Shown here piece after piece: positions 5,442-64,000 of a DNA stretch of 64,000 nucleotides (its first letter is position 1; each line of letters begins with the position of its first letter). The DNA lies in the NCBI GenBank assembly GCA_977017575.1, contig CDRNVI010000041.1:186001-250000 (forward strand). The letters are read 5' to 3'. The position numbers were made by a program, and so were the translations under genes. A model generated the notes under the pieces. The model was not told where the DNA came from. It saw only the letters and a list, made by a program, of their open reading frames with translations, and did not search any database. Source of the DNA: Paramoeba atlantica. Taxonomy: Eukaryota; Protista; Discosea.

Positions 5442-6000
5442 TTGCGGTGGTTGTATAACTACCGCTCTACCCTCGATTATTGCAAAAAAAGTAAACAAAA
5501 ACAGTGAAAATATAAAGAGAAACACAGTAATATAATAGTCTATTATAGAAGAAAAAAATATAAAAGGGGGCTCCGGTGATCCAAAATTGAAAAAAAAATT
5601 GAAAAAAATGGGGGGTCTAGGGGGGGTCCACGGGGGGGGCATACATCGCGAATTTTTTCCGAATTTTTTGCTTTTCGAAATCAAGCGCGGGGAAGTGGTA
5701 GAGTAGGCTGCGGCGATAATTTTCCACCCCCCCCCTGGGGGTACCACCCCCTGGTACGCGCAGGAGGGGTCCGACAAGGTCAAAAATTCCGAAATTTTTG
5801 GGGTGACCAAAAAAAAAATTGACCCGAAAAAAGGTAAAAATAATATTTTTCCAAAGTCGACTCCTAAAACGCGTTTTAAGAGGTATGGACCTCAGCTACC
5901 ATTCTACGACGTTTTTTTCGTCAGATTCGCCTCCTTCCCCTACTGGCAACGCATCAAAAACGGCCCAATTCGGGTTGAAATTTAAAAAACAATCCATTTT
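5442..6000 (-). mobile_element. Dispersed copy of hairpin-ended repeat R (subfamily R2)
   Basis: Starts A|TTGCGGTGGTTGTATAACTACCGC, the same terminus as at 39141, 42620 and 63651. Interior matches 40420-41050. Confidence 0.85.
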
Positions 6001-10969: not shown

Positions 10970-11378
10970 AAGGGGGGGTACGTCTATTGTTGGCAATCAT
11001 CTATTGTTGGCAAACTAATAAAAACACCTATTGCTGGCAATCGGTTATTGTTGACATTTAATTATTTTTGGTTTTTTTGACCCATTGCCATGTATGACGT
11101 ATAAACTCCTGGAATCTGCGAAGGTCAAAATTTCCACTTTTTTCGAAACTTTCCTCTTTTTCGAGGATACGTATACATGTATGTGTCCTCGTGTATGTGA
11201 GGGGGGGCGACGGTAGTGTAAGTGATAAAAGTAGCGTAAGTTACCTTGATAGCCAACAATAGTTGATTTTATTGCCGTTCCATCTATTGTTGGTAAAGGG
11301 GGGTATTGTATCATCTATTGTTGGCTATCGGCTATTGTTGGCAAAAAAAAGTAGCCAACAATAGACGAGCCCCCCCTC
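10970..11378. mobile_element. 409-bp MITE with TA flanks
   Basis: TA at 10968-69 and 11379-80; 25-bp TIR (A/G)AGGGGGGG(TA/CT)CGTCTATTGTTGGC; several subterminal (T)CTATTGTTGGC copies. Confidence 0.8.
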
Positions 11379-39096: not shown

Positions 39097-39602
39097 GTGA
39101 CTTGTTTTAGAATTTTAGAATAACTTCATCATAAAATAAATTGCGGTGGTTGTACAACTACCGCTCTACCCTCGATTATTGGAAAAAAAAAGTGAATAAA
39201 AACAGTGAAAATATAAAGAGGAACACAGTAATAAATTTGTTAGACTCTTCGCTAAACGCGGTGGTTGTTTTCAACTTAGAAGTCACTCATGCTGCGCGCT
39301 TCGCGTTGAAAACGCCGCGTTTAACGAAGAGCCTAAAAAAGAAACATCGTCAAAAGATCATAAATAATCTATTTTGGGGGGTAAAAAAGCTCGATTTTTC
39401 GGCGAAAAATGCGAAATTTTAACCCGAATTTGGACAGTTTTTGATGCCTTACCCGTAGGGGCAGGAGGCGAATCTGTCAAAAAAAAAAGACGTCGCAGAA
39501 TGGTAGCTGAGGTCCAAAACTCTTAAAATACATTTTAGGAGTCAATTTCGGAAAAATAATATTCTTACTTTTTGTTTGGTGAAAAAAATGATTTTTTGGT
39601 TA

Positions 39603-42195: not shown

Positions 42196-42619
42196 CAGAG
42201 TTCTAGGTTTTTGCGCTATTTTCACCCCAAAAGAAAACAATTTTGTTTATGGCATTTTTTTAAAGTTTTTTTGCCCCTCTAAAATTTGCAGTTTTTCCCA
42301 AATTTGCTCATTTTTTCGTTTTTTCTCCATTTCGTCTCAGTTTTTGCCGCGAAAGCGATCCCGTTCTATGCAGAACAAAGGATCTCTCTCCGATAGGGCG
42401 TACTCCTCCCCTGGGCACACCAAATATTCACATACAGTAGCAAAAAAACCGTCAGCAAAAAAACCGTTCGAATGTTTCGGTTTTTTCTTCTTTTGTATAG
42501 AGCTATTGATTAAATATCACCGTTGCGCTGGTAATGTGTGCTAGTAGCATGAGTGTCACCTAATAGTACCCGTAGATAGTTTGCCTCAGTTCGTTCTACC
42601 AAAGAAATAAGAATGAATA

Positions 42620-43510
42620 TTGCGGTGGTTGTAAAACTACCGCTCTACACTCGATTATTGAAAAAAAAGTGAACAAAAACAGTGAAAATGTAAAGGGTAA
42701 CACAGTAATATAATAGAAGAAAAAAATATAAAAGGGGGCTCCGGTGGTCCAAAACTGAAAAAAAAAATTGAAAAAAATGGGGGGTCTAGGGGGGGGGGTC
42801 CAGGGGGGGGGCATGGTCGATCAAATTTTTTCGAAAAAATTAGTTTTCGAAAAAAACCGCAGAAAGGGTAGCCGGGGTCTTGGCGCGCATTTTCCACCCC
42901 CCTACCCGGGGGTGACCCCCCCGCGTATCCGCAGGACGGGTCCGCCAAGTTCGGATTTTTTCGGAAAAATTTTTTCGAAAAAAAATTCAACTTGGCGAAA
43001 AAAATGACAAAAAAAATATTTTTCCAAAATCGTTTCCCCTATTGTATTTTGATAGTTTGGGACCTACACTAGCTTTCTACGCAGTTGTTTTCGCAAGGTA
43101 TCACTTCTTCGAACTGTGGTGCGCCCCTCAAAATGACCCACTTTTGACTAAAAAAGGTGAAAAAGTATTTTTCGGACCTAAAGGGGCATTTTTGTGTCGA
43201 AAGAATGGTATGGTTGGAGTCGCATTCTCTACCCAATACGTTCGGTAGGCTTTCATTCATGCCTGCGAGTGATTTCCCACGCGCAAATGTCGGATTTAGT
43301 GCTCTGAGAGCAAAAATGTGCGAAAATGACCCCATTTGTACCCGAAATTCGGCTATTTTTGGCTATAATCTTTCCGTTTTCCAGGCTAAATTTTCTTTTT
43401 TAGGCTCTTCGTTAAACGCGGCGGTAGTTTTCAACGCGAAGCGCGCAGCATGAGTGACTTCTAAGTTGAAAGCAACCACCGCGTTTAACGAAGAGCCTAA
43501 AAAAGAAATA
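42620..43510 (-). mobile_element. Apparently full-length solo R1 unit
   Basis: Begins A|TTGCGGTGGTTGTAAAACTACCGC and ends with the 97-bp hairpin plus AAAAAAGAAATA; reverse complement of unit 55908-56830. Confidence 0.85.
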
Positions 43511-44927
43511 ACTCGAAAAATATAACTCGTTAATCACTGCATCCTTCCTAAAATTCTGTACGTAAACTTTTAATATATTTTTTTATATAATAATTTATTT
43601 TAGGCTCTTCGTTAAACGCGGTGGTTGCTTTCAACTTAGAAGTCACTCATGCTGCGCTATTCGCGTTGAAAACTACCGCCGCGTTTAACGAAGAGCCTAA
43701 AAAAGAAAATTGGCCAGGGACGCGGAAGAAAACGGAAGAATTTGAGCCAAAAATAGCCGATGTTTTGGTAAAAATGGGGTGATTTTTTGTATATAGAGCA
43801 CTAAAGTCGAGAATGCGACTCCAACCACACGATTCGTACGACTCAAAAAGACCTCTTGGTGTCCAAAAATTACTTTTTCGCATTTTTTGATCAAAAATGG
43901 GACATTTTGGGAGGCGTACCACGGCTTCAAGAAGCGACACCTCGCAAAACCAATGACGTAAAAAGCTAGAATAGGCCACGAACTATAAAAATACAATAGG
44001 CAAAACAAATTTGGAAAAATATTCTTTTTACCAATTTTTTCGTCAAGTTGAAAATTTTTTCAAAATTTTTTTTCCGAAAAAATCGGAACTTGACGGACCC
44101 GTCTTGCGGATACGAGGGGGGGTCACCCCCGGGTAGGGTATGCCCCCCCCATAGACCCCCCAGTTTTTTCAATTTTTGTTTTCAATTTTGGACCACCGGA
44201 TCCCCCTTTTATATTTTTTTCCTTTACGGCGTTTAACGAAGAGCTTAGAAAAGAAAAATTTGACAGGAGAGTAAAAGAAACCAGAGGGATAACTCTGGAT
44301 TTGGTCCAAAAAGAGCCGATAGTTGGGCAAAAATAGGGTTGTTTTTGCATATTTCCGCTCACATGTGTTTTCCTTCGGTTCGCACGATTTTGAACGAAGC
44401 AGGGTGGAGACCTCTTTTTTTGAAAGGCCCTTGAATTCACCCCGGCTTTTGAAGGGGGGGGGATTTACTTCGTGGGTTTACTTCTTCGTTTTGATTCATT
44501 TGGTTTACGCCAGGGGTGCAGTTAATGCCATGTCGGAACGCTTTTCTGACAGTAAGTTGGATATGCACTAATTCAGTCATCAAAAGCATATTTGTTGAAT
44601 GATCAGGCTAAAAATAGAAGAAGTGATGACTGCAACTGTAGATCTGCTATGTAAATGTAAACATTTTTTTAACAAATTTAGTTTCAATTGTATTTATTTG
44701 AGTTTAGAAAATGCGAAGTTACAAATACTTACAGAGGGTTTCCGAGACACAAAGTAAAACCACAGAAAAACTTTGATGCGATGAAACGTAAAAAAACGGT
44801 GCTGTGGACGAATTTAAGCCGAAAATTTCTCGAAAGAAAAGTGTTTTATTTCCTTCTCCAACCTTCGAATCATGAATTCAAAATTTTAAACCAACTTTCA
44901 CTTCCAAACGTCTTCTTACACACTTAT

Positions 44928-45269
44928 TCAGAAAATTAAGTATCTGTTTCTCTTCTTTTTCCCTTTGAAGTAAACGCTCGATGCGCGCTTCGCTTCTTCC
45001 GTAGTGCTAAAACACACGTGCGCCAGTCCTTTTTTTGATACGATTGTTATGCAATCGATTTCACCATACGAAGCGTAATGCTTGGTAAGGTCTTCTTTAG
45101 TCGTAGAGGAGGGAAGGTGTTCTATTGTGATTGAGCGCTCGTCACGCTCTTCGCGCGCAGAGCGCAAAACGTGTAGAGATTCTAAGTAATCATCTCTTTT
45201 GCGCTTTGTATCTCTTTCCTTGTCGGAAATGTCGTTACCATTGGTTGATTGATTCTCCGCCGAGGCCAT
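44928..45269 (-). CDS. Small RRM-domain ORF downstream of RepHel
   Basis: RNP2-like SITIEHLP, TTKEDLTKHYASYGEI and RNP1-like KGLAHVCF; ATG at 45269 gives 113 aa. Confidence 0.65.
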   Translation of the reverse strand: MASAENQSTNGNDISDKERDTKRKRDDYLESLHVLRSAREERDERSITIEHLPSSTTKEDLTKHYASYGEIDCITIVSKKGLAHVCFSTTEEAKRASSVYFKGKKKRNRYLIF

Positions 45270-45363
45270 AGTAAATTCAAAGAAAGTTTTTAAAAAAATC
45301 AAGCTGAGTCTAGAAACATTCAACTTAAAAAGCAATACATGAACGTAGAAGTCTTGTTTTTGA

Positions 45364-45560
45364 AGGGCCTGCCCGGAGGGCCCTTCGAGAGGGTGCAGAC
45401 CCGCTGCCGCGGGGGGTGCTTTACCTCGTGACATGTAATTTTGAAGGAAACAAGCTTCTGATAACTTTTTTTGCAGGGCCCGCCCGGAGCGCCCTTCGAG
45501 AGGGTACAGGCCCGCTGCCGCGGTGGGTGCTTTTGAAGCAAACAAGCTTCTGAAATTTCG
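45364..45560. repeat. 111-bp GC-rich tandem duplication between RepHel and the RRM ORF
   Basis: AGGGCC(T/C)GCCCGGAG(G/C)GCCCTTCGAGAGGGT at 45364 and 45475. Confidence 0.85.
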
Positions 45561-45761
45561 ATAAAAAAAATTGAAAGCAATTTTGACGGAGCGTAATTCT
45601 GCAGCTATGATGGAGACATTTTTTTTTGGTAGAGGGCGCGTGAGCGTTGGGGTCACTCGCACTTCTTCTGCCGAAGCTGAAGACGCCGGGCTTGTGACCG
45701 GTATCAAGCGTGCTTCCCCCCTAGAGAGGTCTTCCTAAGAAGATCGTTTCAATCTAATTTC

Positions 45762-48700
45762 TTAGAATTGATAAGTCAAATCGGTAAGCCGATTTGCTTT
45801 TTCCATGGCCGGAAATTTAGGCCTATGGTAACCTGAAGTCAGGTGTGTTCCTGGGCGATCTGTGCCCATGCCAGGGAGCACTCGAATATCATCGAGGCAT
45901 TGTGCCCTGGATATTGCTACTGTGAGCTTGGCGAGTTCCGGTCTCTTGGACCACGCCTTATCATTCAAGTCAAGAATAACACCTTTCTTCACGGTGATAC
46001 CTTGTACTTTGTGATACGTATAGGCAAATCCCAATTCCACTTGAAAGTTTCCTTGGGAAGCCTTATCATGGTGCTGCGCCTTTTTGGCGTAAAATTCTAC
46101 ACCTGACCCCTTCTCAATGCATTGCATAAAAGAAGGGGCTTTTCGTAGATAACGAACACCATCAATAGTGTCGTATGACAAATCGTCTGACACAAGGTCT
46201 CTCATTTCAATCACTGTCCCATTCGCAATTTTCATTGTATAAGGAGCAATGTTCTCGGTGATTACACCGGGTGCTCCTTTTACAAATACAGAAAATGCTT
46301 CAGGGTGTGTGTCAATGAGTTTACCTTGGACGTTATCGCCTGTCCATGCGAACAATGGGCAATTGTGACGTCTGGAAAAATTTCTTGCCATTGCGACATT
46401 AATCTTGTGCCGTTCAATATTTGTTCCAACAATGACAATTGCATTGCGGAACTTTTCTTGGTCCTCAGAGGTAAGAGGTTTTACCAATTGGATGAACTTC
46501 TTCAACCCCTCATTGGGAGCTTTTCGAAGAAGACGCAAGATATCTGAAAATACAGTATCTTGTCGTGCTCGCATTTGCTGTTTGAGTTCAAACACATACG
46601 AGACTTGAAAAATATTCTCAAAAATGGGATTATTACCAAGAGAGCTATCTTCTATGGTAAGAGACGCTCCTTGTACTGGTCTCAGCTGATAAAAATCTCC
46701 AACAAAGAGCATGTTGATGCCTCCATAGGGAAGCTGCTCATTTCCTTTGATTTGCTGCAGTCTAGTGTTGATACAGGCAAGGAAACACTTGCTGATCATT
46801 GACACTTCGTCGACTATGATTAATCGACATTTCTCATACCTTTGTTGGTATGGTAGAAGGCTACTGCTTGAAAGATGTTTCAAATTTCTTGCAGTAGCCC
46901 CTATCGGTATGCAGAGGGAAGCGTGTATTGTGCAACAGTGCAGTACTGATGCGGCGATCCCAGTGGGCGCCATTGCAATACATTGGCTTCCCAGTTCTTG
47001 CATTATGAAACGGGAAACTAGACTTTTCCCGGTTCCGGGGCCACCGAGCAGAAACATACATTTCCGCTCGGGGTCTAGTTTCCCGTTTAGTAAATCTTCA
47101 ATTTGATTTACGCACTGTTTCTGTGCTTGGTTCAGTTCAATGGAATTGTTGTCTTCGCGCAATATGTAGCTGCGATCGAACGTAATCTCTTCGTATTGAT
47201 TACTGCGAACCAGTGGACGATCCTCATTAAAATGAGCTCTGTCCACTGGTGCACTTGGCTCAGATTGAGCCGAAGTTGCAAATCGTTCGTTTTGGATCAT
47301 TTCAGCATAGCGCTCTCGCGCATTTATGACTGAAATATTGGACCTCGTCCTTGTCATTGTCGATGCAAGATCAACATTTTCTTCAGAGGAGTTCTCAGTA
47401 GAACCTCCTAACGCGGCCGTTAAAGCTCGCGTTTGTAGTTCGCAGTATGCATTCTGCTGAACCAATCGCTCTTCATTAACCACTGCAGTGTTCTGCTGTG
47501 CTTCAAGAGCATCTTGAAGATGAGGTTCAACCTCTCGCACTTCAAGCTCATTTTCGTACGCAATGTTGCGTGCTAATCTTGCTTCTTCCAGAGTGCAAGC
47601 ATCTTTGCGTCGATACAAATCTGCCGCGTTCTCTGTATTCTTCGAAGCATGTAAAAGCCGAAGAAAGTTGCACATTATGTCATACTTTCCAGGCGTATTT
47701 ATTTTCGCTTCATTGAGAAGCTTTTCAAACCCTTCTAGGGTCATTTCATGGCTCGGTGAGCCTTTCGTCCATGGGGAAAACAATGCCACCATGTGTTTCG
47801 CTACTCGAAGATGGCTTCGAGCTCGTGCCCCAGGTTCTTTTGAAGAACTCAATATGGGAAAACCTGGTATAGCTGGCACAGTGTGCAAAGAGCGCAACTG
47901 TTGCTCAACAATATCTCCAGGCTCAAATTCCGGGTGGCCGTCAATGTCCTCAAAGGCGTATCTCCCATTAGCACGACGTCCGCGACGACGTCTTCGATTT
48001 GTCCCTGACTCAAAATCTGAATCATGATCGGGCTCTTCTTGAGCTAGTTCAGCTCTTTTCTTCTTTACGCTGACAATGCCTGCATAGGAATACAGGTCAA
48101 GGTCTTGAAGATCTTCGCCCCTGTGCATGTAACGCACATGGAGTGGTGCAAGAACTGCACAATCATGTTCGGTGATCATTAGAGGAGCCTCTAAGATACC
48201 GTTGTCGAACTCCATATTAGAGTCTTGTGACGAATCATCGTCACTGATTTCTGGATCTCTGTGATCAGACTCACTTGGGATATTTGCCAGGAACTTCATT
48301 ACACGGTTCATATTGATCCATGTGAAGTTATGGCTCATATACTCGGAGGATTGGCCGAGACAAAAGGCAGTTGCCATTTCGATTGAAACTTCTATCTTTC
48401 GATGTGTCATGTTCGACAATTTCTGTAGAACTAAGCGCGCCATCGGAATGTCAGTTTGCACTCTGTTCTCTGAATTCAGACCCATTTGAAGGTGGTCATT
48501 GGCTGCGCGAAGTGCTGGTACAATGTACACAGGTGGACCAATGTCCTTGCTCATATATTTTATGAGATATTGCATAATTTTTATGCCTGGACCTTCGCTC
48601 CCAATGAAAACTACACATGTATTGCATCTTACGCAAGCAGTGAGTGTTTCATTGTACGGAACGGTGATGGATCCCCGTTTAGTGTGTTGTGTCGGGTCCT

Positions 48701-51700
48701 GGTTATTGCGCAGAAGCACAATCAGAGACCTTTCATCAAGTACTGGCCAAATGGTATCATTTTTAATCGGCCGTGTTGGAGCCTTGAGCCGGAATTCCGG
48801 TTGTCCGGATTCATCCATCTGAACCTCAACCTCTCTAACTTCCGTTTCATTTTCATGAAGTACGGATGGAATGCCATATCGGCATTTGTTCTTGCCAATG
48901 TTTCCTTTCATTTTGAAACACATGGGTCTGTGACCAACGTGCTGCTGAACATCAACAGCACATTTGGCCACATGTTCCCTGAAATAATCATCCTTTTCAT
49001 CAGGAATGATATGTAGACCTCCGCGATACATCTTTGAGTAGTCGAGCGTTGCATGGCCGTAAAGCTCCTTACTGATCCTTTGCGCCCACTCGGGCAGATC
49101 AGCGCGCATCGTCGTACCCAAAGACTTCGCGAGACCATCGTGCTCCTTCACAATGTGAATTAATTCGGAGACGTAATGTGGACTAAGATTCGTCCATAGC
49201 ACACTATGAAAGTGTAGCGCACCTCTTTTCTGGCATTCTACAACACCAAAAAATGCTCGAGGGCGACCAAAGAGGCCTTCAAGAACGTCACGTTCCTTCT
49301 TTACCTCATCTACATTCGACATTCCGTACAATTCGGTAAGAAGAGTACGGATTTGCCGTTCGAAAATGCTAGTGGATCTGACAGGATTCCCTTGCACAAG
49401 CTCAGATCGCTTGAGAAGGTTGGCCCGCATTTCCTGCATTTTTTCGCTCTCATCATTTGTGATGATTCTTAGAGCTAGAACGTTATCGTTCATGTTTGGA
49501 CTCACTGTGATCCAGTAACTTGGCAGTCCGTATCGCCTGTATAAGGCGTAGATCTGGCCTTGTGATGCCTTTCGCTTTGCTGGCGAAAAGGGTATCGTTT
49601 TTGCGCATACTTGCACAAATGGCAGAAACTTTGTTTCCAGAAGTTTCGCCTCGGAACTGTTTGGGTTCCTTATAGCCTGTTGCACAATGTGATAGAAAGC
49701 ATCAGCATTGCAAAAATTCATGAGGCTTCTGTGCATATCTTTGTTATACTTCAGATTTTGCACTACTGCTGATGAGACTGCACGGCGCCGAAGCACATCG
49801 TAGCAGTAAAATATGAATCCAGCATTCTTTGCAAATCGGGAATCCGATTGCTCTAGAATTTCCTTGATTTCATATAGTTCAAACGTTGAACCCTTAAAAG
49901 GGTACTTTTGCATCAGCGTCGGAAATGCTCCGAGCAAGATGTTTTCCATGTCGGTATACTCATTGAGTAAACCTTCTTTTTGTTTCAGTTGCATCGCCAC
50001 GGCATGCGTAATTTGCGCACCCGCCGGCGCATTGCTTACAGGGCTGTGATCAGTTACAAAAGATCGTGTGATCTCACCGCGAGGATCGCGATGTAACGTA
50101 TCGGAAGCCACTGCTTGGGTGACCATACTGTTGATGGCGTTTTCACCCTCCTGGGAAACAGATCTATCCCAAAGATGTGAGACAACGTCTCTACAATGTT
50201 GCTCGGTAACAACGTTGATCTTTCCTTCCTCTTTCAGTTGAGCATACACGTGGTTATGCTCACAGAGGAAGTGTACCCAGGTGTTCAGGGTCTCTGATTT
50301 CACGCCGAATATGCCACTCAGCTGTGCAGAACATAGTCTTTGACTACGTTTCGTTCTCCGTTCGTTGGCTATCCAAACAATTTGGATGTTCTTAATCGCG
50401 CCCTCGAGATCAGGAACTCTTTCGAGTTGCAAGAGCTCAAGGGTTTCGCGTGCTGTAGCCGTCACGTGTCCAGTGAACTTCGTGTCTGGCCTTAAGGATG
50501 CGGCATATGCGCCACCTTTCCTATGTACACTGATGATTGTGCAGTGTAAAAACACCTTTTGAAGAAGGATCTCTTCTACCAGCGTGGGTACTGGAAGGTG
50601 ATTTGTAGAAGGTTGTTCTACTGGACCGCGGGGAATTCTCCCTTTTTTGTCCATTATTCTTTGATCCCTTGCACAAAGTTGCGCTTCGGGATTCGGAAGG
50701 TCACTTTCGAGAAGAATAACTTTACAAGAATCACAACTTGTGATACGTTGGTCGTCGTTCATTCTCTTTTTGTACCTTTTCATGCACTCTTCTTGAGCTT
50801 CCGTACTGACTGAAAAATCTTCCAAAGGAAGACGATCAATGTAGGAAGTCTCATAGAAGTATTTTAGTGCGTCTTTTGGATTGCGCTCAATGTCAAAACG
50901 TGTTCGACGTGAGCCATCTCCATTGACTTCGTATGTGTCAAAATTGACAATACATTTCGCGATGCAACATCGTTCAAGCCAGTACCGAAGTTCATTGGCT
51001 GAAGATTCTTTGCATATTTCGTTTGTGTGAAAGATGGTATTTTCACACATCTGCATGATAGCATATGCTGCACTGTCAATAGTGCTAGCATTCGTCACAT
51101 TCGTGACAGTTGCTTGATTCAAAATTGAAACAATTTCATTTTCAAGAGAGGGACTCGTAATAAACGTATAAACGTTCTTTTCACCCTTCTTTTTCAAGGA
51201 AACAAGGACCCATATGGGCCCCGATGATTCATCTGTTTCCAAGTATGTAAATATGTGTAAACCCACACGGTTCCTTGAAGTGAACTTGTCACATTCATTG
51301 AATGGACATACTTTCACAGGAAATCGTCGTGTGTTAATGGTTTTACATAATACATTTTCCACAAAGTAGAGAATCTCTACTGATTTTAGTGGATGATCTA
51401 GCCTTGTGAATGCTTCTTTGGTACGCTTTTCTTGTGGATACAAAGTGAGGGGTATAACCCCCACTTCGCCTTTTTCCAGTGAAGCTTCGAGCCACTTCCA
51501 GAGTGATAAAAGTTTATCACGTTCTGTCAGTTTCGGCCAATCACGGTCTTGCGTGATAGTGTAGGCTATGGCTCCCAGGGAGAGCTCACCTTCATCGTTT
51601 CCTACTAAAGGAACTGGCGTAGTAGCCATGTTTCCAATATTGTAGACGGTTCGAATTGCCGCTATCTGTGTTTCCATAGAAGCTGCGCAATTATATGTGA

Positions 51701-52502
51701 ACACTCGTCGTTTAGTCAGACATACCATGGCGAGAGAATCGCCATTGCCTTTAACGTAAACGACGTTATGTCCATCACGATGTCTCTGAATAGAGCATCT
51801 TTTATCTCCATCGCTTTGGAGGGTTTCATCACAAACAATGTGTGAATTGATGAGAATATTCTCAATCAGTTGAAAAGATGTGAGTGTTAGCGTGGAGCAT
51901 TGCTTCACACGTTCCAGCTCATCATCCTGCGATACTGCATGAGCTCTGTTGCGCTCAGCTTGTGTGATCCGAAGTCGAAAAGCCCGAGCTTCAGCATGCC
52001 GCGGATGGCGGTAAAAATGCTTTTGAAGCCCCTTAAACGTGAACATTTGTTCGGTAGCGCACAAAGTGCATTTGAACTTGTTCTGTTCGCAGGGGAGGGC
52101 AAATTCGATCCAGTCGACTTTTGTTTGAACATAACGTGTATGCTCACTTGACACCAAATGGTATTCATCTGCCGGGATAATACCCGTTGTTCCTTGAATC
52201 TGTGCGAAATACGTACATACTTCGCACAGAGGAACATTCATATCAGTTAGGAGCACCTGTGAAGGGTGTCCCATACTGAGTATGTGTCGCATCATAGATT
52301 TGACACTTAGTTTGCGTATGGCGTGCAGTGCGCATACATACGATCCATTAGAGAAACTTACGTGAAGCTCCCATTTCGGATGTAGATACGCCATTTCCCG
52401 ATGTTTCAGAGAATTCGCGTGATTAGTATTCACCATGACTGGCGGGAATCTTGCAAGATAGCAAAGTAATTGAAAGGAATACATAAATGCATTCCTTCGC
52501 AA
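45762..52502 (-). mobile_element. Helitron RepHel: Zn fingers, HUH Rep endonuclease and PIF1/SF1B helicase (Helitron2/proto-Helentron-like; no AP endonuclease)
   Basis: Rep motif 1 YWITVSPN (~49500), motif 2 FFGVVECQKRGALHFHSVLW (~49205-49255), motif 3 YLIKYMSK (~48550). Helicase motifs GGPGTGKS, IIVDEVSMI, GDFYQLRPV, ELKQQMRA, AYTYHKVQG and VAISRA. Confidence 0.95.
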
Positions 52503-54124
52503 TGTTGTGCTACATGCTTCGTTATAGCCTCTTTTTCAAGAGGTGTTTCAGAACACCCAGGCAGTTTGCACTGGTATATGTTTTCTGTTTCAAGGACGTT
52601 TTCTGTCCAAAATGCGTACCACTGCTTGTGCTCAGAGCACTTCGCAGGATTGTGCTTCTTGGGCACACGCCCCGCATCAAAGAATGAACAAGCTTCACAG
52701 CTTTGTTCACTTGTTTTCATATGCTTTTTTTCGACGTGCTTTCTTGCAGCGCCGAGGCTCATCACTTCACCGGAACAAGCGTCCGCAACACACTTGTAAC
52801 CGGATTCTGTCCCTGCGCTTGCGTGAGCTATGGGAAGCTCGTGCCATAGTTCGAACAGTTGCTGTTCGTGTTCGTGGCTGATACTCGAAATATGCTCTCG
52901 AGTTTTCAAGATAGGACGCTGTCCATGCATACTCGAAAAAAAGGAGCATGCTTCACAAATGTCGTGATCTCCGCGCCCATGTTCGAAAACATGTTTGCGC
53001 ATGTAGTAGTACATAAATGTGTACGACGAAGGGTTTGCTTTACCCCGTGATTCTGCACATTTTGTGCACCGAAAGCCTGCAGACATGGTACCTTGCACCT
53101 CAAAGTCCATCCACATGTCGTACATCTCCTTCTCGGTTTTGTGATTCGCACTCGAGAGATGCTCTCGAGTACGTCTTATGGGGGGTTTCCCTTGCAACTC
53201 CTCGAAGAAGGAGCACTCTTTGCAATGGGAATGATCCCCGCGCCCATGTTCGAAAACATGTTTGCGCATGTCATCATACTTGAAAGTACGATGTTCAGGG
53301 TTTTGATCGCCCTGTGCTGTGGCACATTTCGTGCACCGAAAGCCTGCAGACACGGTACCTTGCACCTCAAGGTCCATCCACATGTCGTACATCTCCTTCT
53401 CGGTTTTGTGATTCGCACTCGAGAGATGCTCTCGAGTACGTCTTATGGGGGGTTTCCCTTGCAACTCCTCGAAGAAGGAGCACTCTTTGCAATGGGAATG
53501 ATCCCCGCGCCCATGTTCGAAAACATGTTTGCGCATGTCATCATACTTGAAAGTACGATGTTCAGGGTTTTGATCGCCCTGTGCTGTGGCACATTTCGTG
53601 CATGTAAAGCCATTGACAATGCTTCCTTCAATTTGAAGGACTTTCCACGCGTTAAAAATCTCTTTTTCACGCTTGTGTTTCACACGCTCGTCGTGCTTTT
53701 GTACGCTCAAAACGGGGGGTTTTCCCATGAGCTCTTGGAAGAACGAACAAGGTTCACAAATGATATGCAACCCTTTTAAATGTTCATTTACGTGCCGCTT
53801 CATCAGGGGAGCTGTCAATTCCACCCGAATGTTCGCGTTAGCACATTCTCGGCAGGTGTAAAATTCACCTTCTTCAGCAACATGCTGTTGCCATAGCTCG
53901 TATATTTGAGCTGAGCTTTTATGTGCTTTGCTAGCACTGTGATTAAGGGTCATGCGCACCCTTTTCTTTCCTTTCTTTCTTTGAAAGAAAGTGCAGCATT
54001 CGCAGTCGCGATATGCTTCGCCCAGAGCTTTGTTAGAGCTCAGTTGGCTTCCCCCACCCCCGGCCCCAGCAAGCGACACCTCCAACGACGCCGACGACAC
54101 GGACCACGACGAATCAGAAGACAT
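52430..54124 (-). CDS. Tandem zinc-finger array; probable N-terminus of RepHel, split by a 1-nt frameshift at about 52457
   Basis: Six bipartite units (CxxCxFF..Hx5H..W..CxxC..HxxxH). Unit 7 straddles the frame change and unit 8 lies in the RepHel ORF. Confidence 0.88.
   Translation of the reverse strand: MSSDSSWSVSSASLEVSLAGAGGGGSQLSSNKALGEAYRDCECCTFFQRKKGKKRVRMTLNHSASKAHKSSAQIYELWQQHVAEEGEFYTCRECANANIRVELTAPLMKRHVNEHLKGLHIICEPCSFFQELMGKPPVLSVQKHDERVKHKREKEIFNAWKVLQIEGSIVNGFTCTKCATAQGDQNPEHRTFKYDDMRKHVFEHGRGDHSHCKECSFFEELQGKPPIRRTREHLSSANHKTEKEMYDMWMDLEVQGTVSAGFRCTKCATAQGDQNPEHRTFKYDDMRKHVFEHGRGDHSHCKECSFFEELQGKPPIRRTREHLSSANHKTEKEMYDMWMDFEVQGTMSAGFRCTKCAESRGKANPSSYTFMYYYMRKHVFEHGRGDHDICEACSFFSSMHGQRPILKTREHISSISHEHEQQLFELWHELPIAHASAGTESGYKCVADACSGEVMSLGAARKHVEKKHMKTSEQSCEACSFFDAGRVPKKHNPAKCSEHKQWYAFWTENVLETENIYQCKLPGCSETPLEKEAITKHVAQHCEGMHLCIPFNYFAILQDSRQSW
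52976..53600 (-). repeat. 267-bp (89-aa) near-identical tandem duplication within the Zn-finger array
   Basis: CCCATGTTCGAAAACATGTTTGCGCATG at 52976, 53243 and 53510. Confidence 0.95.
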
Positions 54125-54253
54125 GAGAAGAATAATAGTATGAATAAAAAAGCGCTAAACAGTGAAAAAAATGTATGAACAAAAAAATTCGAAGCACAAA
54201 AATAAGAACATGTGATTTTCATCTCATTTTAGAGGATCATTTTTTAGAGGATC

Positions 54254-57200
54254 TTAGAAGTCACTCATGCTGCGCGCTTCGCGTTCAAAACTACCACCGC
54301 GTTTAACGAAGAGCCTAAAAAAGAAACTTCGGCCTGGACAGCTAAAGTAAAACAAAGATTATAGCCAAAAATAGCCGATTTTAGGGTAAAATTTTTAGGG
54401 TAAAATTTTTGGGTATTTTTGCTCTCAGAGCGCTAAATCTGACATTTGCGTGTGAGAAATCACTCGTAGGTGTGAATGGAAGCCTACTGAACGTATTGGG
54501 TATAGAATACGACTCCAACCACACCATTCTTTCGACATAAAAAGACCCCTTTGGGTTCGAAAATTACTTTTCCGCAATTTTTGGTCAAAAATGGGCCATT
54601 TTGGGAGGCGTGCCACGGCTAGAAGATGGGGTAACTTGCGAAAACAACGGTGTAGATGGCTAGTATAGGTCCTAAACTCTCAAAATACAATAGCGAAAAA
54701 AAATTTGAAAAAATATTTTTTTTACCATTTTTTCCGCCAAGTTGAATTTTTTCTCAATTTTTTTTTTTGAAAAAATCTAAACTTGGCGGACCCGTCCTGC
54801 GGATACGCGGGGGGGTCACCCCCGGGTAGTGGGGTGGAAAATGCGCGCCAAGACCCCGGTACCCCTTCTGCGGTTTTGTTTCGAAAATTTGCTCGACCAT
54901 GACCCCCCCCCCCCTGGACCCCCCATTTTTTTCAATTTTGGACCACCGGAGCCCCCTTTTATATTTTTTTCCTTTATTATATTACTGTGTTCCTCTTATA
55001 TTTTCACTGTTTTTGTTCACATTTTTTCAACGTTGAAAACTACCGCCGCGTTTAACGAAGAGCCTGAAAAAGAAAATTTGGCCTGTAAAGCTGAAGAAAA
55101 CGGAAAGATTATAGCCAAAAATAGCCGAATTTCGGGCAAAAATGGGGTGATTTTCGCGTATTTTCTCAGAGCACTAAATCCGACATTTGCGCGTGGGAAA
55201 TCACTCGCAGGCATGAATGAAAGCCTACCGAACGTATTGGGTAGAGAATGCGACTCCAACCATACCATTCTTTCGACACAAAAATGCCCCTTTAGGTCCG
55301 AAAAATACTTTTTCACCTTTTCTAGTCAAAAATGGGTCATTTTGGGGGGCGCACCACGGTTCGAAGAAGTGATACCTTGCGAAAACAACTGCGTAGAAAG
55401 CTAGTGTAGGTCCCAAACTATCAAAATACAATAGGGGAAACGATTTTGGAAAAATATTTTTTTTGTCATTTTTTTCGCCAAGTTGAAATTTTTTTCAAAA
55501 AATTTTTTCCGAAAAAATCCGAACTTGGCGGACCCGTCATGCGGATACGCGGGGGGGTCACCCCCGGGTAGGGGGGTGGAAAATGCGCGCCAAGACCCCG
55601 GCTACCCTTTCTGCGGTTTTTTTTTCGAAAACTAATTTTTTCGAAAAAATTTGCTCGACCATGCCCCCCCCCCCTGGACCCCCCCCCTGGACCCCCCCCC
55701 TGGACCCCCCCCCTGGACCCCCCCCCTGGACCCCCCCCATGGACCCCCCATTTTTTTCAAATTTTTTTTCAGTTTTGGACCACCGGAGCCCCCTTTTATA
55801 TTTTTTTCTTCTATTATATTACTGTGTTCCCCTTTATATTTTCACTGTTTTTGTTCACTTTTTTTTCAATAATCGAGTGTAGAGCGGTAGTTTTACAACC
55901 ACCGCAATAATATTTTCTTTTTTAGGCTCTTCGTTAAACGCGGTGGTTGCTTTCAACTTAGAAGTCACTCATGCTGCGCGCTTCGCGTTGAAAACTACCG
56001 CCGCGTTTAACGAAGAGCCTAAAAAAGAAAATTTAGCCTGGAAAACGGAAAGATTATAGCCAAAAATAGCCGAATTTCGGGTACAAATGGGGTCATTTTC
56101 GCATATTTTTGCTCTCAGAGCACTAAATCCGACATTTGCGCGTGGGAAATCACTCGCAGGCATGAATGAAAGCCTACCGAACGTATTGGGTAGAGAATAC
56201 GACTCCAACCATACCATTCTTTCGACACAAAAATGCCCCTTTAGGTCCGAAAAATACTTTTTCACCTTTTTTAGTCAAAAATGGGTCATTTTGGGGGGCG
56301 CACCACAGTTCGAAGAAGTGATACCTTGCGAAAACAACTGCGTAGAAAGCTAGTGTAGGTCCCAAACTATCAAAATACAATAGGGGAAACGATTTTGGAA
56401 AAATATCTTTTTTGCCATTTTTTTCGCCAAGTTGAAATTTTTTTCAAAATTTTTTTTCCGAAAAAATCCGAACTTGGCGGACCCGTCATGCGGATACGCG
56501 GGGGGGTCACCCCCGGGTAGGGGGGTGGAAATTGCGCGCCAAGACCCCGGCTACCCTTTCTGCGGTTTTTTTTCGAAAACTAATTTTTTCGAAAAAATTT
56601 GCTCGACCATGACCCCCCCCCCTGGACCCCCCCCCTGGACCCCCCCCCTGGACCCCCCCCATGGACCCCCCATTTTTTTCAATTTTTTTTTTCAGTTTTG
56701 GACCACCGGAGCCCCCTTTTATATTTTTTTCTTCTATTATATTACTGTGTTCCTCTTTATATTTTCACTGTTTTTGTTCACTTTTTTTTCAATAATCGAG
56801 TGTAGAGCGGTAGTTTTACAACCACCGCAATCTTTTTTAGGGCTCTTCGTTAAACGCGGTGGTTGCTTTCAACTTAGAAGTCACTCATGCTGCGCGCTTC
56901 GCGTTGAAAACTTCCACCGCGTTTAACGAAGAGCCTAAAAAAGAAAATTTAGCCTGGAAAACGGAAAGAATATAGCCGAAAATAGCCGAATTTCGGGTAC
57001 AAATGGGGTCATTTTCGAATATTTTTGCTCTCAGAGCACTAAATCCGACATCTGCGCGTGGGAAATCACTCGCAAGGCATGAATGAAAGCCTACCGAACG
57101 TATTGGGTAGAGAAATACGACTCCAACCATACCATTCTTTCGACACAAAAATGCCCTTTAGGTCCCGAAAATACTTTTTCACCTTTTTAGTCAAAAATGG

Positions 57201-57770
57201 GTCATTTTGAGGGGCGCACCACAGTTCGAAGAAGTGATACCTTGCGAAAACAACTGCGGAGAAAGCTAGTGGAGGTCCCAAACTATCAAAATACAATAGG
57301 GGAAACGATTTTGGAAAAATATTTTTTTTGTCATTTTTTTCGCCAAGTTGAAATTTTTTTCGAAAAAATTGTTCCGAAAAATCCGAACTTGGCGGACCCG
57401 TCCTGCGGATACGCGGGGGGGTCACCCCCCGGGTAGGGGGGTGGAAAATGCGCGCCAAGACCCCGGCTACCCTTTCTGCGGTTTTTTTTCGAAAACTAAT
57501 TTTTTCGAAAAAATTTGATCGACCATGCCCCCCCCCCCCTGGACCCCCCCCCTGGACCCCCCCCCTGGACCCCCCCCTGGACCCCCCCCCTGGACCCCCC
57601 CCATGGACCCCCCATTTTTTTCAAAAAAATTTTCAGTTTTGGACCACCGGAGCCCCCTTTATATTTTTTTCTTCTATTATATTACTGTGTTCCTCTTTAT
57701 ATTTTCACTGTTTTTGTTCACTTTTTTTTCAATAATCGAGTGTAGAGCGGTAGTTTTACAACCACCGCAA
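54254..57770 (+). repeat. Head-to-tail array of four R1 units (54254-55029 truncated, 55030-55907, 55908-56830, 56831-57770)
   Basis: Period of about 920-940 bp. Complete units have a 97-bp hairpin at one end, a variable (CTGGACCCCCC)n minisatellite, and GCGGTAGTTTTACAACCACCGCAA at the other end. Confidence 0.93.
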
Positions 57771-58434
57771 TTTATATTATGAGATATGATTTGTTTGTTT
57801 TGTTTAGAGATTTCATTTATTTAGTTTGGTATAGTGACACTCCTTCTCTAACCTTTTTATTGCGCCCGCCCACCAACCCCCAACCACTTCGCGGAGTTGG
57901 CGGACGGGATGCCCATGGGAGTTTGGCATAAAATTTTTAAATGCACCACGAGATTCACTAGCTACTATCCGGAAACTATCCCGAAGGAACCAAAGTGCAG
58001 GACACTAGAAGTCTACGCATGGAAATTTAAGGGGCTAATATCGGGTCAAATGCCCGGAAGGGGTTATAATTTTCATTGTTCTTTTCCCCGAAAGGGGGTT
58101 GTAATTGAATCATGTAATAAAAGCTACAATATGTATTCTGAAAATTTACATATTTACTGATTACTTACTTGTAGAATCTTTTTCCTTTACGCGTTTTTTG
58201 TTACCATGCGTTCCCAGCGACTTCGCGTGCCGGCGAACCCAGGACATGAGCGAGACCGCAGCCCTAAGCGAACACGTCCTCTCTCCCCTTTGGACCCCGA
58301 CAAACGCCGTTCCTTGTCTTGTCCAGCTGGGCGACCACCTTGTCCTGATCCAGCTTCGCCAGTAGACTCTTTCGCGGTTCCTTCGCTGCGCTATTCTGGC
58401 CGAAACCGACGCACAGTACACCCTTCTCCTTTTG

Positions 58435-58508
58435 AGGTGGCGGAGTGGGGGTGGAGGTGGCGGAGTGGGGGTGGAGGTGGCGGAGTGGGGGTGGAGGTGG
58501 CGGAGTGG
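58435..58508 (+). repeat. 20-bp G-rich tandem repeat (CGGAGTGGGGGTGGAGGTGG) x~3.7
   Basis: Exact 20-bp period; G-quadruplex-capable composition. Confidence 0.95.
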
Positions 58509-58857
58509 CAAGAACTCAAAGTTTGAAGCACATGGTGCTCAGACGGCGAGTTCAAACCCACTCATCGCAACATTCCTGGCGGCCTCACTCTAAGAGACTG
58601 GGCTGATAACCGACTAAGCCCAGTACTCGGAGGACCGTCCCGGACCCTCCCATCAGGGAACCAGCTCCCTTACCCGGCTTACACCTCTTGGGTAAGCCGT
58701 GTTGACGTACAGTTCGTCGACGCAGCGTGTTGGCAACAGCACGTTGGTGCCGCCTTGGACAAGCGGAAACTGGTAGAGGACGTCGGCCTCGGAACTTCCA
58801 AATCTGTCTGTGAAGGGTCTGGCTTGCCAGTGACCATCCGGAGCAATCCGGAATGAT

Positions 58858-59958
58858 TTGGATTTTTTTTTTCCTCCTTACCCCAGCCCTTACCCTGACC
58901 CCCTAACGGCCCCCAAGAACTCGGGAGATGTTCCCCCACGGCGGCAGAGCACGCTCAACCCTGACCAAGTTGAGGCTTCCCGCCCCCCTCAGCGTTATGA
59001 AGACCTTAATCTCGACCATGTAGACCGTGCTATTCGATCCAACCAAAATGCGCGTGGAATATTGACTCAGACTGCTAAGGAAGAATTTGTAACCAAGATA
59101 ATTAATCTTCTTCGCAAAGAATACCAGGTCACTGTCGAGGCAGTGTGGTCTCGACCAGGTGATGACATTCGACAGAAAGTCATAGGCGACGTTTACATGA
59201 AGCACCCAAATGACCCAGTGTCCTTAGAATTGGTCGCTGAGTGGGATGGTGATGTCAATACGGCATACCGCTTTCCCCATCCCGACATTACGTATCACGA
59301 TTTAACGGTCGTCCGTGTTCGGGCAAAGATGCCTGGAGGGCAGCCGGTGGAATCTTTAATCCCGTCCTTTGAACGAGTACGTATTACAGACCCCAAAAGC
59401 TTCTCCCCCTACGACCCGGTTACGTGGCAACCGTGGATCGACACGGAGGATTTGTTCAAGCCCCGAGACCTCATCCGTGAGCTGAGGGAGGCGCCGCAGC
59501 TAGGGGTTCGATTCAACCCGCCACCGCAGCGGCACCGTTTATTCAAGATCCTTATCGAATGGATCTACGCTGCTCGCCTGACGGAGGGTTGGATGGAGAA
59601 ACATAACCTTGCTGTGGCAGAACTCATAATCGAGGAACTCCGCAATCTCTACTGGGCCGCTGCGGGTGTTGCTGTCGAACGCGTGCAACAGCGACTGCAT
59701 CGTGATGATGATCCGAAGGATCGTTATGGGCAACTCGTTCTCGACGAACAACTCCGAGGTCGTCCCCAAGTTCGATCCTCCCGTCGTCGGCCTTTCTGCT
59801 TCTCGTGTCACCAGCCGGGCCACATTCGTGCGGACTGCCCGCAGATGGCTCAGGCCGAGCACCAGTTTCGTCCCTCCCATCCGACGAATCAGGATTTTCG
59901 CGGAGGGGTGGCGGGCGGCGCCGTCCGTTACGCCGGCTCAACACGGGGTTCCCACTAG
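58858..59958 (+). CDS. Gag-like protein with a CCHC knuckle; probably extends upstream to about 58206 across indels
   Basis: CFSCHQPGHIRADC (CX2CX4HX4C). The upstream frame at about 58530-58854 is also open and protein-like. Confidence 0.82.
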   Translation: MDFFFPPYPSPYPDPLTAPKNSGDVPPRRQSTLNPDQVEASRPPQRYEDLNLDHVDRAIRSNQNARGILTQTAKEEFVTKIINLLRKEYQVTVEAVWSRPGDDIRQKVIGDVYMKHPNDPVSLELVAEWDGDVNTAYRFPHPDITYHDLTVVRVRAKMPGGQPVESLIPSFERVRITDPKSFSPYDPVTWQPWIDTEDLFKPRDLIRELREAPQLGVRFNPPPQRHRLFKILIEWIYAARLTEGWMEKHNLAVAELIIEELRNLYWAAAGVAVERVQQRLHRDDDPKDRYGQLVLDEQLRGRPQVRSSRRRPFCFSCHQPGHIRADCPQMAQAEHQFRPSHPTNQDFRGGVAGGAVRYAGSTRGSH

Positions 59959-61649: not shown

Positions 61650-62652
61650 AGGCACGGCCCAAGTTTAGATTTCGATCGACATTGGGCGAAGTTTTCGAGA
61701 TGAACGTTCTTCCCATGGGTCATCGCTGCGCACCAGAAATCTGCACACTGTTACCGCCGCAATTGCCGGCGAGAGGTCGGTGTGTCAGGAGCGTTTCTCG
61801 TTTCACAGAGGTGCCACTGACGTTTACGTCGACGGAGTTCGTTTTTCGGGGACAGCGAACGAGACCGTCGAATACGCTCGCTTTATTGACGAGCGGTGTT
61901 CCAAAGCAAACGGCCCTCTTTAAAGACGCCGACAGCCCCCTGCTTTGAAGTATGTTTTCAAAGGGGTGGCTTTCGACCACGACACTCTTACGGCCTGCCT
62001 GGGACCGAGAGTGGTCAGTAAACTGCAAAAAGACAAATTTCATAAATTGTCTTTTGGTGATCTTGAGGCGGCGGTGGGGCGGTCTTCTGTATGGATCTGC
62101 AGTCTTGCGGCTCAATATGCCACGCTTTTATTTAGCGATGAAAGTCGCGCAGCGTAGGATCAACTTATTAAATCGCTGTCCGTATTTTATCGACAAGCAG
62201 TTGATCTTCCGGTAGTTACTCGTTCTACACTTACCGAATGGCGAAATGAATTGATATGCAATCTTCCCCGACCCCCGCCTCCTCATCCTGACACCGTTCC
62301 TCACCACCACAAGTTATACACGGATGCTTCTGCGAAGGGATGGGGGGGCATCATTTACCTTGATTCTGGGGAGGTATTAATTACTGGTGAGGCATGGCCG
62401 AAAAATTTTAAGTATGAAGTGAATCGGCCGAAGCGATGGCGGTCCGCTTAGCTATTAAAAAGTTTGCTATGCACTCCCCCAAAGGAACGTGCTTGGATAT
62501 CTTCGTGGATAACACCTCTGTAAGGCAGCGTTGAACAGGAGATTATCGAAGTCAGAAGGAGTGTCAAAGAATTGAAAGAAATAATACGAGACACTGAGAA
62601 ACGTGGGATTTGTGTCGAGGCGAGATATGTGTCTACGTTGAACAATCCGCCG
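61600..62652 (+). pseudogene. RT and RNase H remainder, broken by several single-base frameshifts
   Basis: DFTCGFYQI, LPMGHRCAPE, DVYVDGV, YVFKGVAFD; RNase H LYTDASAKGWGG, AEAMAVRLA, DIFVDNTSV and YVSTLNNP. Confidence 0.88.
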
Positions 62653-62656
62653 ATCA

Positions 62657-63617
62657 TATTTCTTTTTTAGGCTCTTCGTTAAACGCGGTGGTTGCTTTCA
62701 ACTTAGAAGTCACTCATGCTGCGCGCTTCGCGTTGAAAACTACCGCCGCGTTTAACGAAGAGCCTAAAAAAGAAAATTTAGCCTGGAAAACGGAAAGATT
62801 ATAGCCAAAAATAGCCGAATTTCGGGTACAAATGGGGTCATTTTCGCATATTTTTGGCTCTCAGAGCACTAAATCCGACATTTGCGCGTGGGAAATCACT
62901 CGCAGCATGAATGAAAGCCTACCGAACGTATTGGGTAGAGAATACGACTCCAACCATACCATTCTTTCGACACAAAAATGCCCCTTTAGGTCCGAAAAAT
63001 ACTTTTTCACCTTTTTTAGTCAAAAGTGGGTCAATTTGAGGGGCGCACCACAGTTCGAAGAAGTGATACCTTGCGAAAACAACTGCGTAGAAAGCTAGTG
63101 TAGGTCCCAAACTATCAAAATACAATAGGGGAAACGATTTGGAAAATATTTTTTTTGTCATTTTTTTCGCCAAGTTGAATTTTTTTTTGGAAAAATTTTT
63201 TCCGAAAAAATCCGAACTTGGCGGACCCGTCCTGCGGATACGCGGGGGGGTCACCCCCGGGTAGGGGGGTGGAAAATGCGCGCCAAGACCCCGGCTACCC
63301 TTTCTGCGGTTTTTTTTTCGAAAACTAATTTTTTTCGAAAAAATTTGCTCGACCCTGGATGACCCCCCCCCTGGACCCCCCCCCTGGACCCCCCCCCTGG
63401 ACCCCCCCCTGGACCCCCCCCCTGGACCCCCCCCCTGGACCCCCCCCATGGACCCCCCATTTTTTTCAAAAATTTTTTTCAGTTTTGGACCACCGGAGCC
63501 CCCTTTTATATTTTTTTCTTCTATTATATTACTGTGTTCCTCTTTATATTTTCACTGTTTTTGTTCACTTTTTTTTCAATAATCGAGTGTAGAGCGGTAG
63601 TTTTACAACCACCGCAA
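62657..63617 (+). mobile_element. Full-length R1 unit
   Basis: Same termini and interior as 55908-56830, with a longer minisatellite. Confidence 0.9.
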
Positions 63618-63650: not shown

Positions 63651-64000
63651 TTGCGGTGGTTGTAAAACTACCGCTCTACACTCGATTATTGAAAAAAAAG
63701 TGAACAAAAACAGTGAAAATATAAAGAGGAACACAGTAATATAATAGAAGAAAAAAATATAAAAGGGGGCTCCGGTGGACCAAAACTGAAAAAAAAATTT
63801 GAAAAAAATGGGGGGTCCATGGGCGGGGTCCAGCGGGGGGGTCCAGGGGGGGGGGGCATGGTCGAGCAAATTTTTTCGAAAAAATTAGTTTTCGAAAAAA
63901 AACCGCAGAAAGGGTAGCCGGGGTCTTGGCGCGTATTTTCCATCCCCCTACCCGGGGGTGACCCCCCCGCGTATCCGCATGACGGGTCCGCCAAGTTCGG
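63651..64000 (-). mobile_element. Inverted R1 unit running off the window end
   Basis: A|TTGCGGTGGTTGTAAAACTACCGC, 33 bp after the preceding unit, tail-to-tail. Confidence 0.9.

Follow-up and report, generated by a model that had tools for sequence, protein, structure and literature searches.

A young, high-copy repeat with the ends of a RepHel element: a probable Helitron2-group variant in a kinetoplastid-like genome

Introduction

The DUF6570 domain is described by the authors of HELIANO as specific to the HLE2 (Helitron2/Helentron) clade of transposable elements, with UCH domains enriched in two subgroups (PMC11417382). The defining features of HINE/DINE-1 elements are palindromic subterminal repeats, central tandem repeats, no target site duplication (TSD), a TT target, a short 3' palindrome, and a variable T run (PMC4067079). 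Proto-Helentron or "HLE2-reverse" elements have a 5' TT, a stem-loop at the 5' end proximal to the open reading frame (ORF), an A|T target, DUF6570, no endonuclease, and a defined 3' end (PMC4067079, PMC11417382). Here, we describe a repeat, R, and an adjoining 12.3-kb RepHel element in a 64,000-nucleotide stretch of DNA (the window; contig 41, bases 186001 to 250000, from an assembly of 45.7 Mb in 248 contigs). On the sequence evidence, R is very probably a non-autonomous rolling-circle family member of the Helitron2 group (HLE2), with this RepHel element as its partner.

The genome resembles those of kinetoplastids, a group reported to be without such elements. A survey found Helitron transposases absent from kinetoplastid genomes (PMC8788227). 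Trypanosomatids are described as being without DNA transposons, putative Helitrons there being false positives, and for Bodo saltans and Perkinsela, Merlin alone has been reported among DNA transposons (PMC12278014). A literature search on Bodo saltans and Helitrons, read mainly at the level of titles and abstracts, found no paper appearing to describe such an element.

The labels 5' and 3' follow the direction of the RepHel ORF and need not be those of the moving strand, because reversed ORFs are documented in such elements (PMC5148889). Family statistics refer to an alignment of 65 non-redundant R copies, and loci labeled L009, L059, and so on are R-bearing loci fetched from across the genome.

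Results

RepHel copies with R ends. A genome search with the 2,246-amino-acid (aa) RepHel ORF found about 20 loci. The minus strand of the window is collinear with the copies on contigs 43 and 52 from 55907 down to 43598 (identity over the coding part, 99.7% and 98.9%, respectively), and because this homology spans it, we delimit the autonomous element as 12,310 bp (43598-55907). All three copies start with A|TTGCGGTGGTTGTAAAACTACCGC and finish in the palindrome of R. The contig 43 element is flanked by unique DNA on both sides (start, ...TAATTAA|TTGCGGTGGTTG...; end, ...GAAGAGCCTAAAA|TTATC...), and the window element has the boundaries ...ATATTA|TTGCGG and ...CCTAAAA|TAAATT. At least the first 60 nt of element and R are identical, and their palindromes differ at two loop positions. 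The original prediction took R for the non-autonomous partner of this RepHel and named the ends of other RepHel copies as a place to look; those on contigs 43 and 52 proved to be R termini, not unrelated sequence.

The R-like units of the element are more distant from R than the termini, with 93% identity in the 5' unit and 84 to 87% in the 3' body. Its 5' region consists of two fused units, A and B, joined at a common TTGAAA, without the palindrome loop, the outer arm, and the next hairpin; other copies of the autonomous element keep both units as their 5' region. Since identity is only 93% and 84 to 87%, R is not a recent deletion of the subfamily to which the window element belongs.

The contig 43 copy has an intact single ORF of 2,965 aa and, after it, where the window has an RRM ORF, a second one of 226 aa counted from the first Met. 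In the window element, a 1-bp deletion near 52449 splits a 564-aa N-terminal part from RepHel. The zinc-finger-like N-terminal region holds a 267-bp (89-aa) tandem repeat (window, 52965-53687), and the contig 43 copy exceeds that of the window by 549 bp, equal to about two additional 267-bp units. A domain search with the RepHel ORF found Helitron_like_N (PF14214, 2.1e-21), with the HUH motif HFH, and PIF1 (PF05970, 5.9e-25); DUF6570 (PF20209) lies upstream of Rep (2.9e-11; 44.4 bits against a cut-off of 24.3). No endonuclease (Exo_endo_phos) was matched in the 2,246-aa or the 564-aa ORF.

The nearest database relatives of the RepHel protein have about 32% identity. Among 19 relatives, DUF6570 was present in 16, UCH in 3, and an endonuclease in 1 (the distant P0009). 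Flanks of P0001 and P0002 (32% identity) gave no informative inverted repeats, and their contigs are too short for element ends. Against solved structures, in a comparison set without a Helitron transposase entry, the Rep region was unmatched and the whole ORF matched PIF1-type helicases only.

Beside the contig 52 element (L023:1130-1400), the 18-bp unit ATCTTAATAAAAATTGTT is repeated in tandem ~15 times, right up to the RepHel 5' end. The last of these units upstream of RepHel shares AAAAATTG with the 5' junction.

Structure of R. R is a ~0.92-kb non-coding repeat with an exact 5' end, a central 13-bp minisatellite, and a ~100-nt palindrome at the far end. The exact end reads A|TTGCGG and continues into a terminal hairpin (9-bp stem, 4-nt loop). 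On the RepHel-sense strand the hairpin folds at -8.0 kcal/mol (z, -6.0); it is weaker on the opposite strand (-6.2 kcal/mol) because a G:T wobble there becomes an A:C mismatch, in agreement with the predicted confinement of the wobble to the strand co-oriented with RepHel. The 24-nt terminus TTGCGGTGGTTGTAAAACTACCGC occurs in eight window copies at one mismatch or fewer, and in none of 100 shuffles. All eight junctions had been read as A|TTGCGG with unrelated sequence beyond: the preceding base is indeed A in 8/8, while two of the eight abut the tail of another R.

At the far end, the 97-bp fold-back described earlier, which encloses the terminal motifs, was recovered. Its arms are perfect over 20 bp (55924-55943/56001-56020) and, at 93% complementarity, extend to 46 nt with a 29-nt loop between them (I1); either strand folds at -49 kcal/mol (z, -12). 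Within this fold-back, the two arms of the terminal hairpin are present again as perfect inverted copies of 10 and 11 nt (I8 and I11). The subterminal inverted repeats of R are palindromic and start 2 nt from the 5' end. The inverted 3' copy is interrupted by the palindrome loop, which is atypical for inverted repeats of the HLE2 group (usually ~12 to 16 nt).

The minisatellite has the 13-bp unit CCCCCCCCCTGGA in 4.5 to 6.5 copies, the number differing among R copies. No ORF conserved among R copies was found, and an Rfam search of R gave no match; the description of R as a non-coding unit of ~0.9 kb with a variable central minisatellite stands. On the RepHel-sense strand, the minisatellite (55666-55749, 56614-56671, and 57531-57613) reads (TCCAGGGGGGGGG)n and might fold into G-quadruplexes, structures that helicases of the PIF1 type are known to unwind.

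Abundance and age. Genome-wide, the exact 24-mer occurs 377 times (354 after A, 18 after G, 5 after T, and 0 after C). In a BLAST search with one R unit, of which the best 121 of 1,626 candidates were scored, matches were mostly full-length with 96 to 98% identity. Most copies are solitary with unique flanks, and where solitary copies were fetched with their flanks, exact A|TTGCGG stood beside unrelated DNA in 20/20. Divergence from the consensus has a median of 1.6%, and pairs of copies have a median identity of 97.2%. Metagenome contigs scanned for exact matches to the 24-nt terminus gave none. There is good support for R as a young, high-copy, non-coding partner of the RepHel element.

The R-like units at both ends of the autonomous element lie in direct orientation, an arrangement from which solitary R copies could be left by recombination between the bracketing repeats, as solo long terminal repeats are. 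We consider this extremely improbable: there are 377 exact 5' ends and only ~20 RepHel loci, and empty sites (below) reveal clean 0.9-kb insertions in otherwise identical sequence. Nor are R copies chimeras of the 5' and 3' units, because they are homogeneous at 97% yet only 93% and 84 to 87% identical to those units.

Target site. Four filled sites were compared with empty counterparts. These were contig 157 against contig 87 (flanks 99% identical; cgctaa|taataatc), contig 94 against six empty paralogues of another repeat (ggtta|tagggg), contig 89 against window positions 11278-11357, and an R nested in another R at AAATA|TAAAAGG against intact R. In all four, the flanks rejoin exactly at a break between A and T, and 0 target bases are duplicated or missing. 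In 55 copies flanked by sequence other than R, the longest direct repeats bridging the insertion were distributed as in a flank-swap control, with no excess. The claim that R makes no TSD is upheld by both comparisons, neither of which revealed a TA or other duplication. Three copies were outliers for flank repeats, one in a satellite and the others at L009 and L059. The 5' flank is most often TTA (20/55 copies), the 3' flank nearly always begins with T, and junctions at both ends read A|T on either strand.

Being short, non-coding, abundant, sometimes tandem, and equipped with internal inverted repeats, R could resemble a cut-and-paste miniature inverted-repeat transposable element, a short interspersed element, or a plain satellite lying near RepHel by chance. 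We give this next to no probability. No TSD was found at the four empty sites or in the 55-copy test, the extreme ends of R are not simple inverted repeats of one another, and no poly(A), tRNA, or other RNA-family match was found; most copies are solitary with unique flanks, and their ends are identical to those of the RepHel element.

Among copies with G before TTGCGG (L040, L053, L062, and L063), the last element base is also G in 3 of ~8 independent events, compared with 0 of ~45 A-flank copies ending in G. An IS608-like guide base was considered for these copies and dropped because they share no private variant.

The palindrome end. Past the core ...GAAGAGCCT, the outer arm runs 0 to 37 nt further depending on the copy, with a peak at 10 to 11 nt. 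At the empty-site comparisons, the last base of the element is A or T. Apart from a few copies, the extra tail bases are complementary to the sequence that precedes the inner arm, and in three long-tailed copies rare variants are matched in both arms. At L009, and apparently at L011, the tail is unlike the copy's own arm, the filler/tail of L009 matching the variant in unit B of the autonomous element. Tail-length class was not significantly associated with relatedness (nearest neighbor of the same class in 32/65 copies, 27 expected; p = 0.13); the window and contig 43 elements, which are 99.7% identical, both have 4-nt tails. The palindrome is in flipped orientation in 3/65 copies and in several short derivatives. 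At L050:641-2409 (contig 8), two R copies, one of them flipped, lie tail to tail around one common palindrome, forming a full-length inverted dimer.

The palindrome end is set by structure, not by a fixed sequence. The outer arm might be built anew at each transposition, a freed 3' hairpin priming synthesis on its own strand in a rolling-hairpin-like manner, a route we put forward tentatively and consider rather improbable. The length of synthesis would then set the 3' end, and the extreme case may give inverted dimers sharing a palindrome. More simply, a long arm might be ancestral and be cut at different points.

Head-to-tail arrays. Four head-to-tail units had been described at 54254-57770. 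Two (56831-57770, copy b, and 55913-56830, copy a) are complete R copies; the other two (55031-55907 and 54254-55027) belong to the autonomous element as its 5' region. Identity between copies a and b is 96.8%, and among the 63 other copies, 50 are closer to a, and 30 to b, than a and b are to each other, although pairwise identity has little power by itself when a family has grown in a star-like burst. They have one non-consensus variant in common, which 25 copies carry, and differ from the consensus at 9/892 (a) and 21/887 (b) sites. Their tails measure 11 nt (a) and 8 nt (b); b abuts a directly, and a is parted from the element by TATTA.

The array had been attributed to rolling-circle read-through, a route by which tandem Helitron arrays have been explained elsewhere (PMC5148889). 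Arrays with identical junctions on contigs 43, 32, and 50 would suit such an origin, or several rounds on a circular template. In the window, a single-event concatemer is quite unlikely, given an a-b identity below the family median, a shared variant that is common in the family, 9 and 21 departures from consensus, unequal tails, the TATTA spacer before the autonomous element, and two "units" that are a fixed part of that element. The read-through claim finds no support here: a and b are not sister copies, and their junctions differ. The array instead fits separate insertions at or near resident ends.

Contig 81 displays this process of repeated insertion directly. One R follows ...GAATA|, as at the paralogous window locus (42619/42620), and a second lies 12 nt upstream, at ...GAAA|TAAG; the 12-nt spacer is host-derived, being the window flank 42608-42619. 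A pattern search found 29 head-to-tail junctions genome-wide with spacers of 0 to 40 nt. The arrays on contig 43 (at 131 to 137 kb), contig 32 (period, 1,875 bp), and contig 50 (period, 2,667 bp) were amplified locally, and unequal exchange and rolling-circle multimers both fit their sequence.

A 38-bp stub of the exact 5' end (TTGCGG...CTCGATTA) stands directly before a full copy at at least five loci (contigs 2, 21, 32, 34, and 40; e.g., L035:1699-1760 and L067). It is sometimes repeated and often lies just after a RepHel 3' end. Simple nested insertion is not the source, because the remainder of the disrupted host copy was not found downstream.

Other features of the window. Coordinates are given in Table 1. 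Between copy b and the R copy at 62659-63617 lies an insert of ~4.9 kb (57771-62658), in which an ORF (58858-59958) has a CCHC zinc knuckle. At 40200-41320 there is a diverged relative of R, with a core of 67 to 69% identity, its own G/C-rich minisatellite, and a palindrome (41122-41241) near-identical to the terminal palindrome of R; this suggests a second, older non-autonomous lineage sharing the same end.

Table 1. Positions of R copies, R-derived sequences, and the autonomous element in the window
Feature	Position	Strand	Description
5'-terminal R fragment	5442..5639	+	89% identity to R
Mini-R, 204 bp	39141..39344	+	First 94 bp of R plus palindrome in inverted ("flop") orientation
Complete R copy, opposite orientation	42620..43508	+	Tail to tail with autonomous element, 89 bp apart
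Autonomous RepHel element	43598..55907	-	12,310 bp; 5' end at 55907; palindrome 43602-43698; 4-nt tail
R-like 3' region of autonomous element	43598..44268	-	Includes terminal palindrome
Second ORF of element	44928..45707	-	RRM domain
RepHel ORF	45762..52502	-	2,246 aa; DUF6570, Helitron_like_N (HUH motif HFH), PIF1 helicase
N-terminal Cys/His-rich (zinc-finger-like) ORF	52430..54124	-	564 aa; 267-bp tandem repeats
R-like unit B	54254..55027	-	80% identity to R; begins near R position 44; without 5' hairpin; ends in palindrome loop
R-like unit A	55031..55907	-	5' terminal region of element; 93% identity to R; without palindrome loop and outer arm
Spacer TATTA	55908-55912		5 bp between R copy a and autonomous element
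Complete R copy a	55913..56830	-	5' end at 56830; palindrome 55924-56020; 11-nt tail
Complete R copy b	56831..57770	-	5' TTGCGG at 57770; palindrome outer arm ends at 56840; 8-nt tail
Complete R copy	62659..63617	-	Separated from copy b by the ~4.9-kb insert
R copy truncated by window end	63651..64000	+	Incomplete

Host genome. Every long ORF between 130 and 39096 of the window is on the plus strand. Among solved chains, the ATP synthase alpha subunit (33090-34817) scored highest with 8ap6/6f5d (985 bits) and 6tdu (825 bits), which we take to be the Trypanosoma brucei and Euglena gracilis enzymes, respectively; the remaining solved chains scored ~420 bits each. Because the highest scores are to these chains, we read the genome carrying R as euglenozoan, most likely that of a free-living kinetoplastid. 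Its kinetoplastid-like features are this subunit, nearest to that of T. brucei, and genes in one-strand clusters. Two loci (L038 on contig 30 and L039 on contig 3) are 100% identical over 2.1 kb, R copy included, and together with the 99%-identical pair of contigs 157 and 87 they suggest recent duplications or uncollapsed haplotypes in the assembly.

Discussion

We propose that the HUH/PIF1 RepHel protein from an intact copy (e.g., that on contig 43) would act in trans, nicking A|TTGCGG beside the hairpin. It would unwind one strand, transfer would end at or just beyond the palindrome, and the transferred strand would be joined into a new A|T site. Head-to-tail arrays would arise mainly from repeated insertion at or beside resident ends, which could serve as insertion sites because they themselves read A|T, and later local tandem duplication would enlarge some arrays elsewhere.

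The polarity could be the opposite, with the moving strand opposite the RepHel ORF, the hairpin plus AA as 3' terminator, and the palindrome as 5' end, as in "HLE2-reverse." The classic Helitron 3' end is precise, abuts a host T, and is preceded at a distance of a few bases by a short GC-rich hairpin, both junctions read A|T on either strand, and reversed ORFs with 5' stem-loops relative to the ORF are known in FoHeli4/5 and proto-Helentron (PMC5148889, PMC11417382). We regard it as possible, although the less probable polarity, for three reasons. The hairpin is stabler on the RepHel strand (G:T wobble against A:C mismatch), a ragged 5' end fits sequence-specific HUH initiation less well than a ragged 3' end does, and the 38-bp stubs attached to a full copy fit a reaction in which a 3'-OH is joined to a TTGCGG 5' end bound by Rep.

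Several observations weigh against the mechanism proposed here, in which RepHel mobilizes R from its TTGCGG end. The window's own RepHel copy is frameshifted; what points to mobilization in trans is the common ends only, and beyond them R falls to 93% identity with the element's 5' unit and 84 to 87% with its 3' body. The strand preference of the hairpin amounts to only 1.8 kcal/mol, and the palindrome folds equally on both strands. L009 and L059 are flanked by target direct repeats of 11 and 13 bp, with 25 and 15 nt of filler, respectively, at the palindrome end. Some arrays, those on contigs 43, 32, and 50, have identical junctions and units or higher-order units that are 98.4 to 99.5% alike.

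The family is thus a variant of a Helitron-type element in an unexpected host: a kinetoplastid-like genome with an apparently recent autonomous/non-autonomous Helitron pair in hundreds of copies, set against the reported absence of Helitrons in kinetoplastids. It mixes criteria of the Helitron groups, with the DUF6570 and inverted repeats of one and the A|T target of the other. Because one end is set by a giant hairpin and not by a fixed sequence, the family offers a natural system for studying the termination of transfer by RepHel enzymes. Before genes are called in this assembly, R needs masking or annotation over roughly 0.3 Mb or more.

A Helitron-like pair is indicated by the termini that R has in common with the RepHel element, the HUH Rep and PIF1 domains, and the absence of a TSD. 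Like canonical Helitrons (Helitron1/HLE1), the family has A-T insertion without TSD, a HUH and PIF1 RepHel, and many non-autonomous derivatives. It differs in having DUF6570 and terminal inverted repeats, and in lacking the 5' TC, the 3' CTRR, and the short hairpin (16 to 20 nt) placed ~11 nt from a fixed 3' end.

The HINE/DINE-1/Helentron label given to R in the original prediction holds in part. Like HINE/DINE-1 (PMC4067079), R is non-coding and abundant, occurs occasionally in tandem arrays, has ends in common with an autonomous partner, and combines palindromic subterminal repeats 2 nt from the 5' end with central tandem repeats and no TSD; DUF6570 in the partner agrees with the label. The partner of R is without an APE-type endonuclease, however, and insertion is at A|T instead of TT or T-rich sequence. 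Neither a separate 5- to 10-bp palindrome (8 to 35 bp from the 3' end in HINE/DINE-1) nor a variable terminal T run is present, the 3' end of R being, in place of a short stem-loop, a palindrome whose arms are 46 nt long and whose A-rich tail is ragged. Because no endonuclease domain was found, the element does not count as a Helentron, nor R, strictly speaking, as a HINE.

Of the HLE2 hallmarks, DUF6570 and short inverted repeats are present, and T|T insertion is replaced by A|T (A flank in 354/377; A|T at the empty sites). The family resembles Helitron2 (Chlamydomonas; FoHeli1/2) in its asymmetric terminal inverted repeats, with the 3' copy upstream of the end, in the hairpin-forming sequence at both termini, and in belonging to the DUF6570-bearing protein group (PMC5148889, PMC11417382). 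Helitron2 is reported to target TTTT|T/C or TNAT|T and has a defined 3' end, whereas this family inserts at A|T and has a ragged 3' end, with the inverted repeat there divided between the two arms of a giant palindrome.

The proto-Helentron of Phytophthora and the "HLE2-reverse" elements (FoHeli3-5) come closest. Unlike them, this family is without a 3' CTAG, its far end is a ~100-nt palindrome with a stop point that varies per copy, its RepHel has only ~32% identity to the nearest database relatives, and its host looks like a kinetoplastid-type protist. Like them, it has DUF6570 and no endonuclease, a 5' TT, a stem-loop 5' of the ORF, A-T insertion without TSD, and extra ORFs. Judged by these sequence features, the family should be classed as a Helitron2-group variant nearest proto-Helentron rather than as true HINE/DINE-1.

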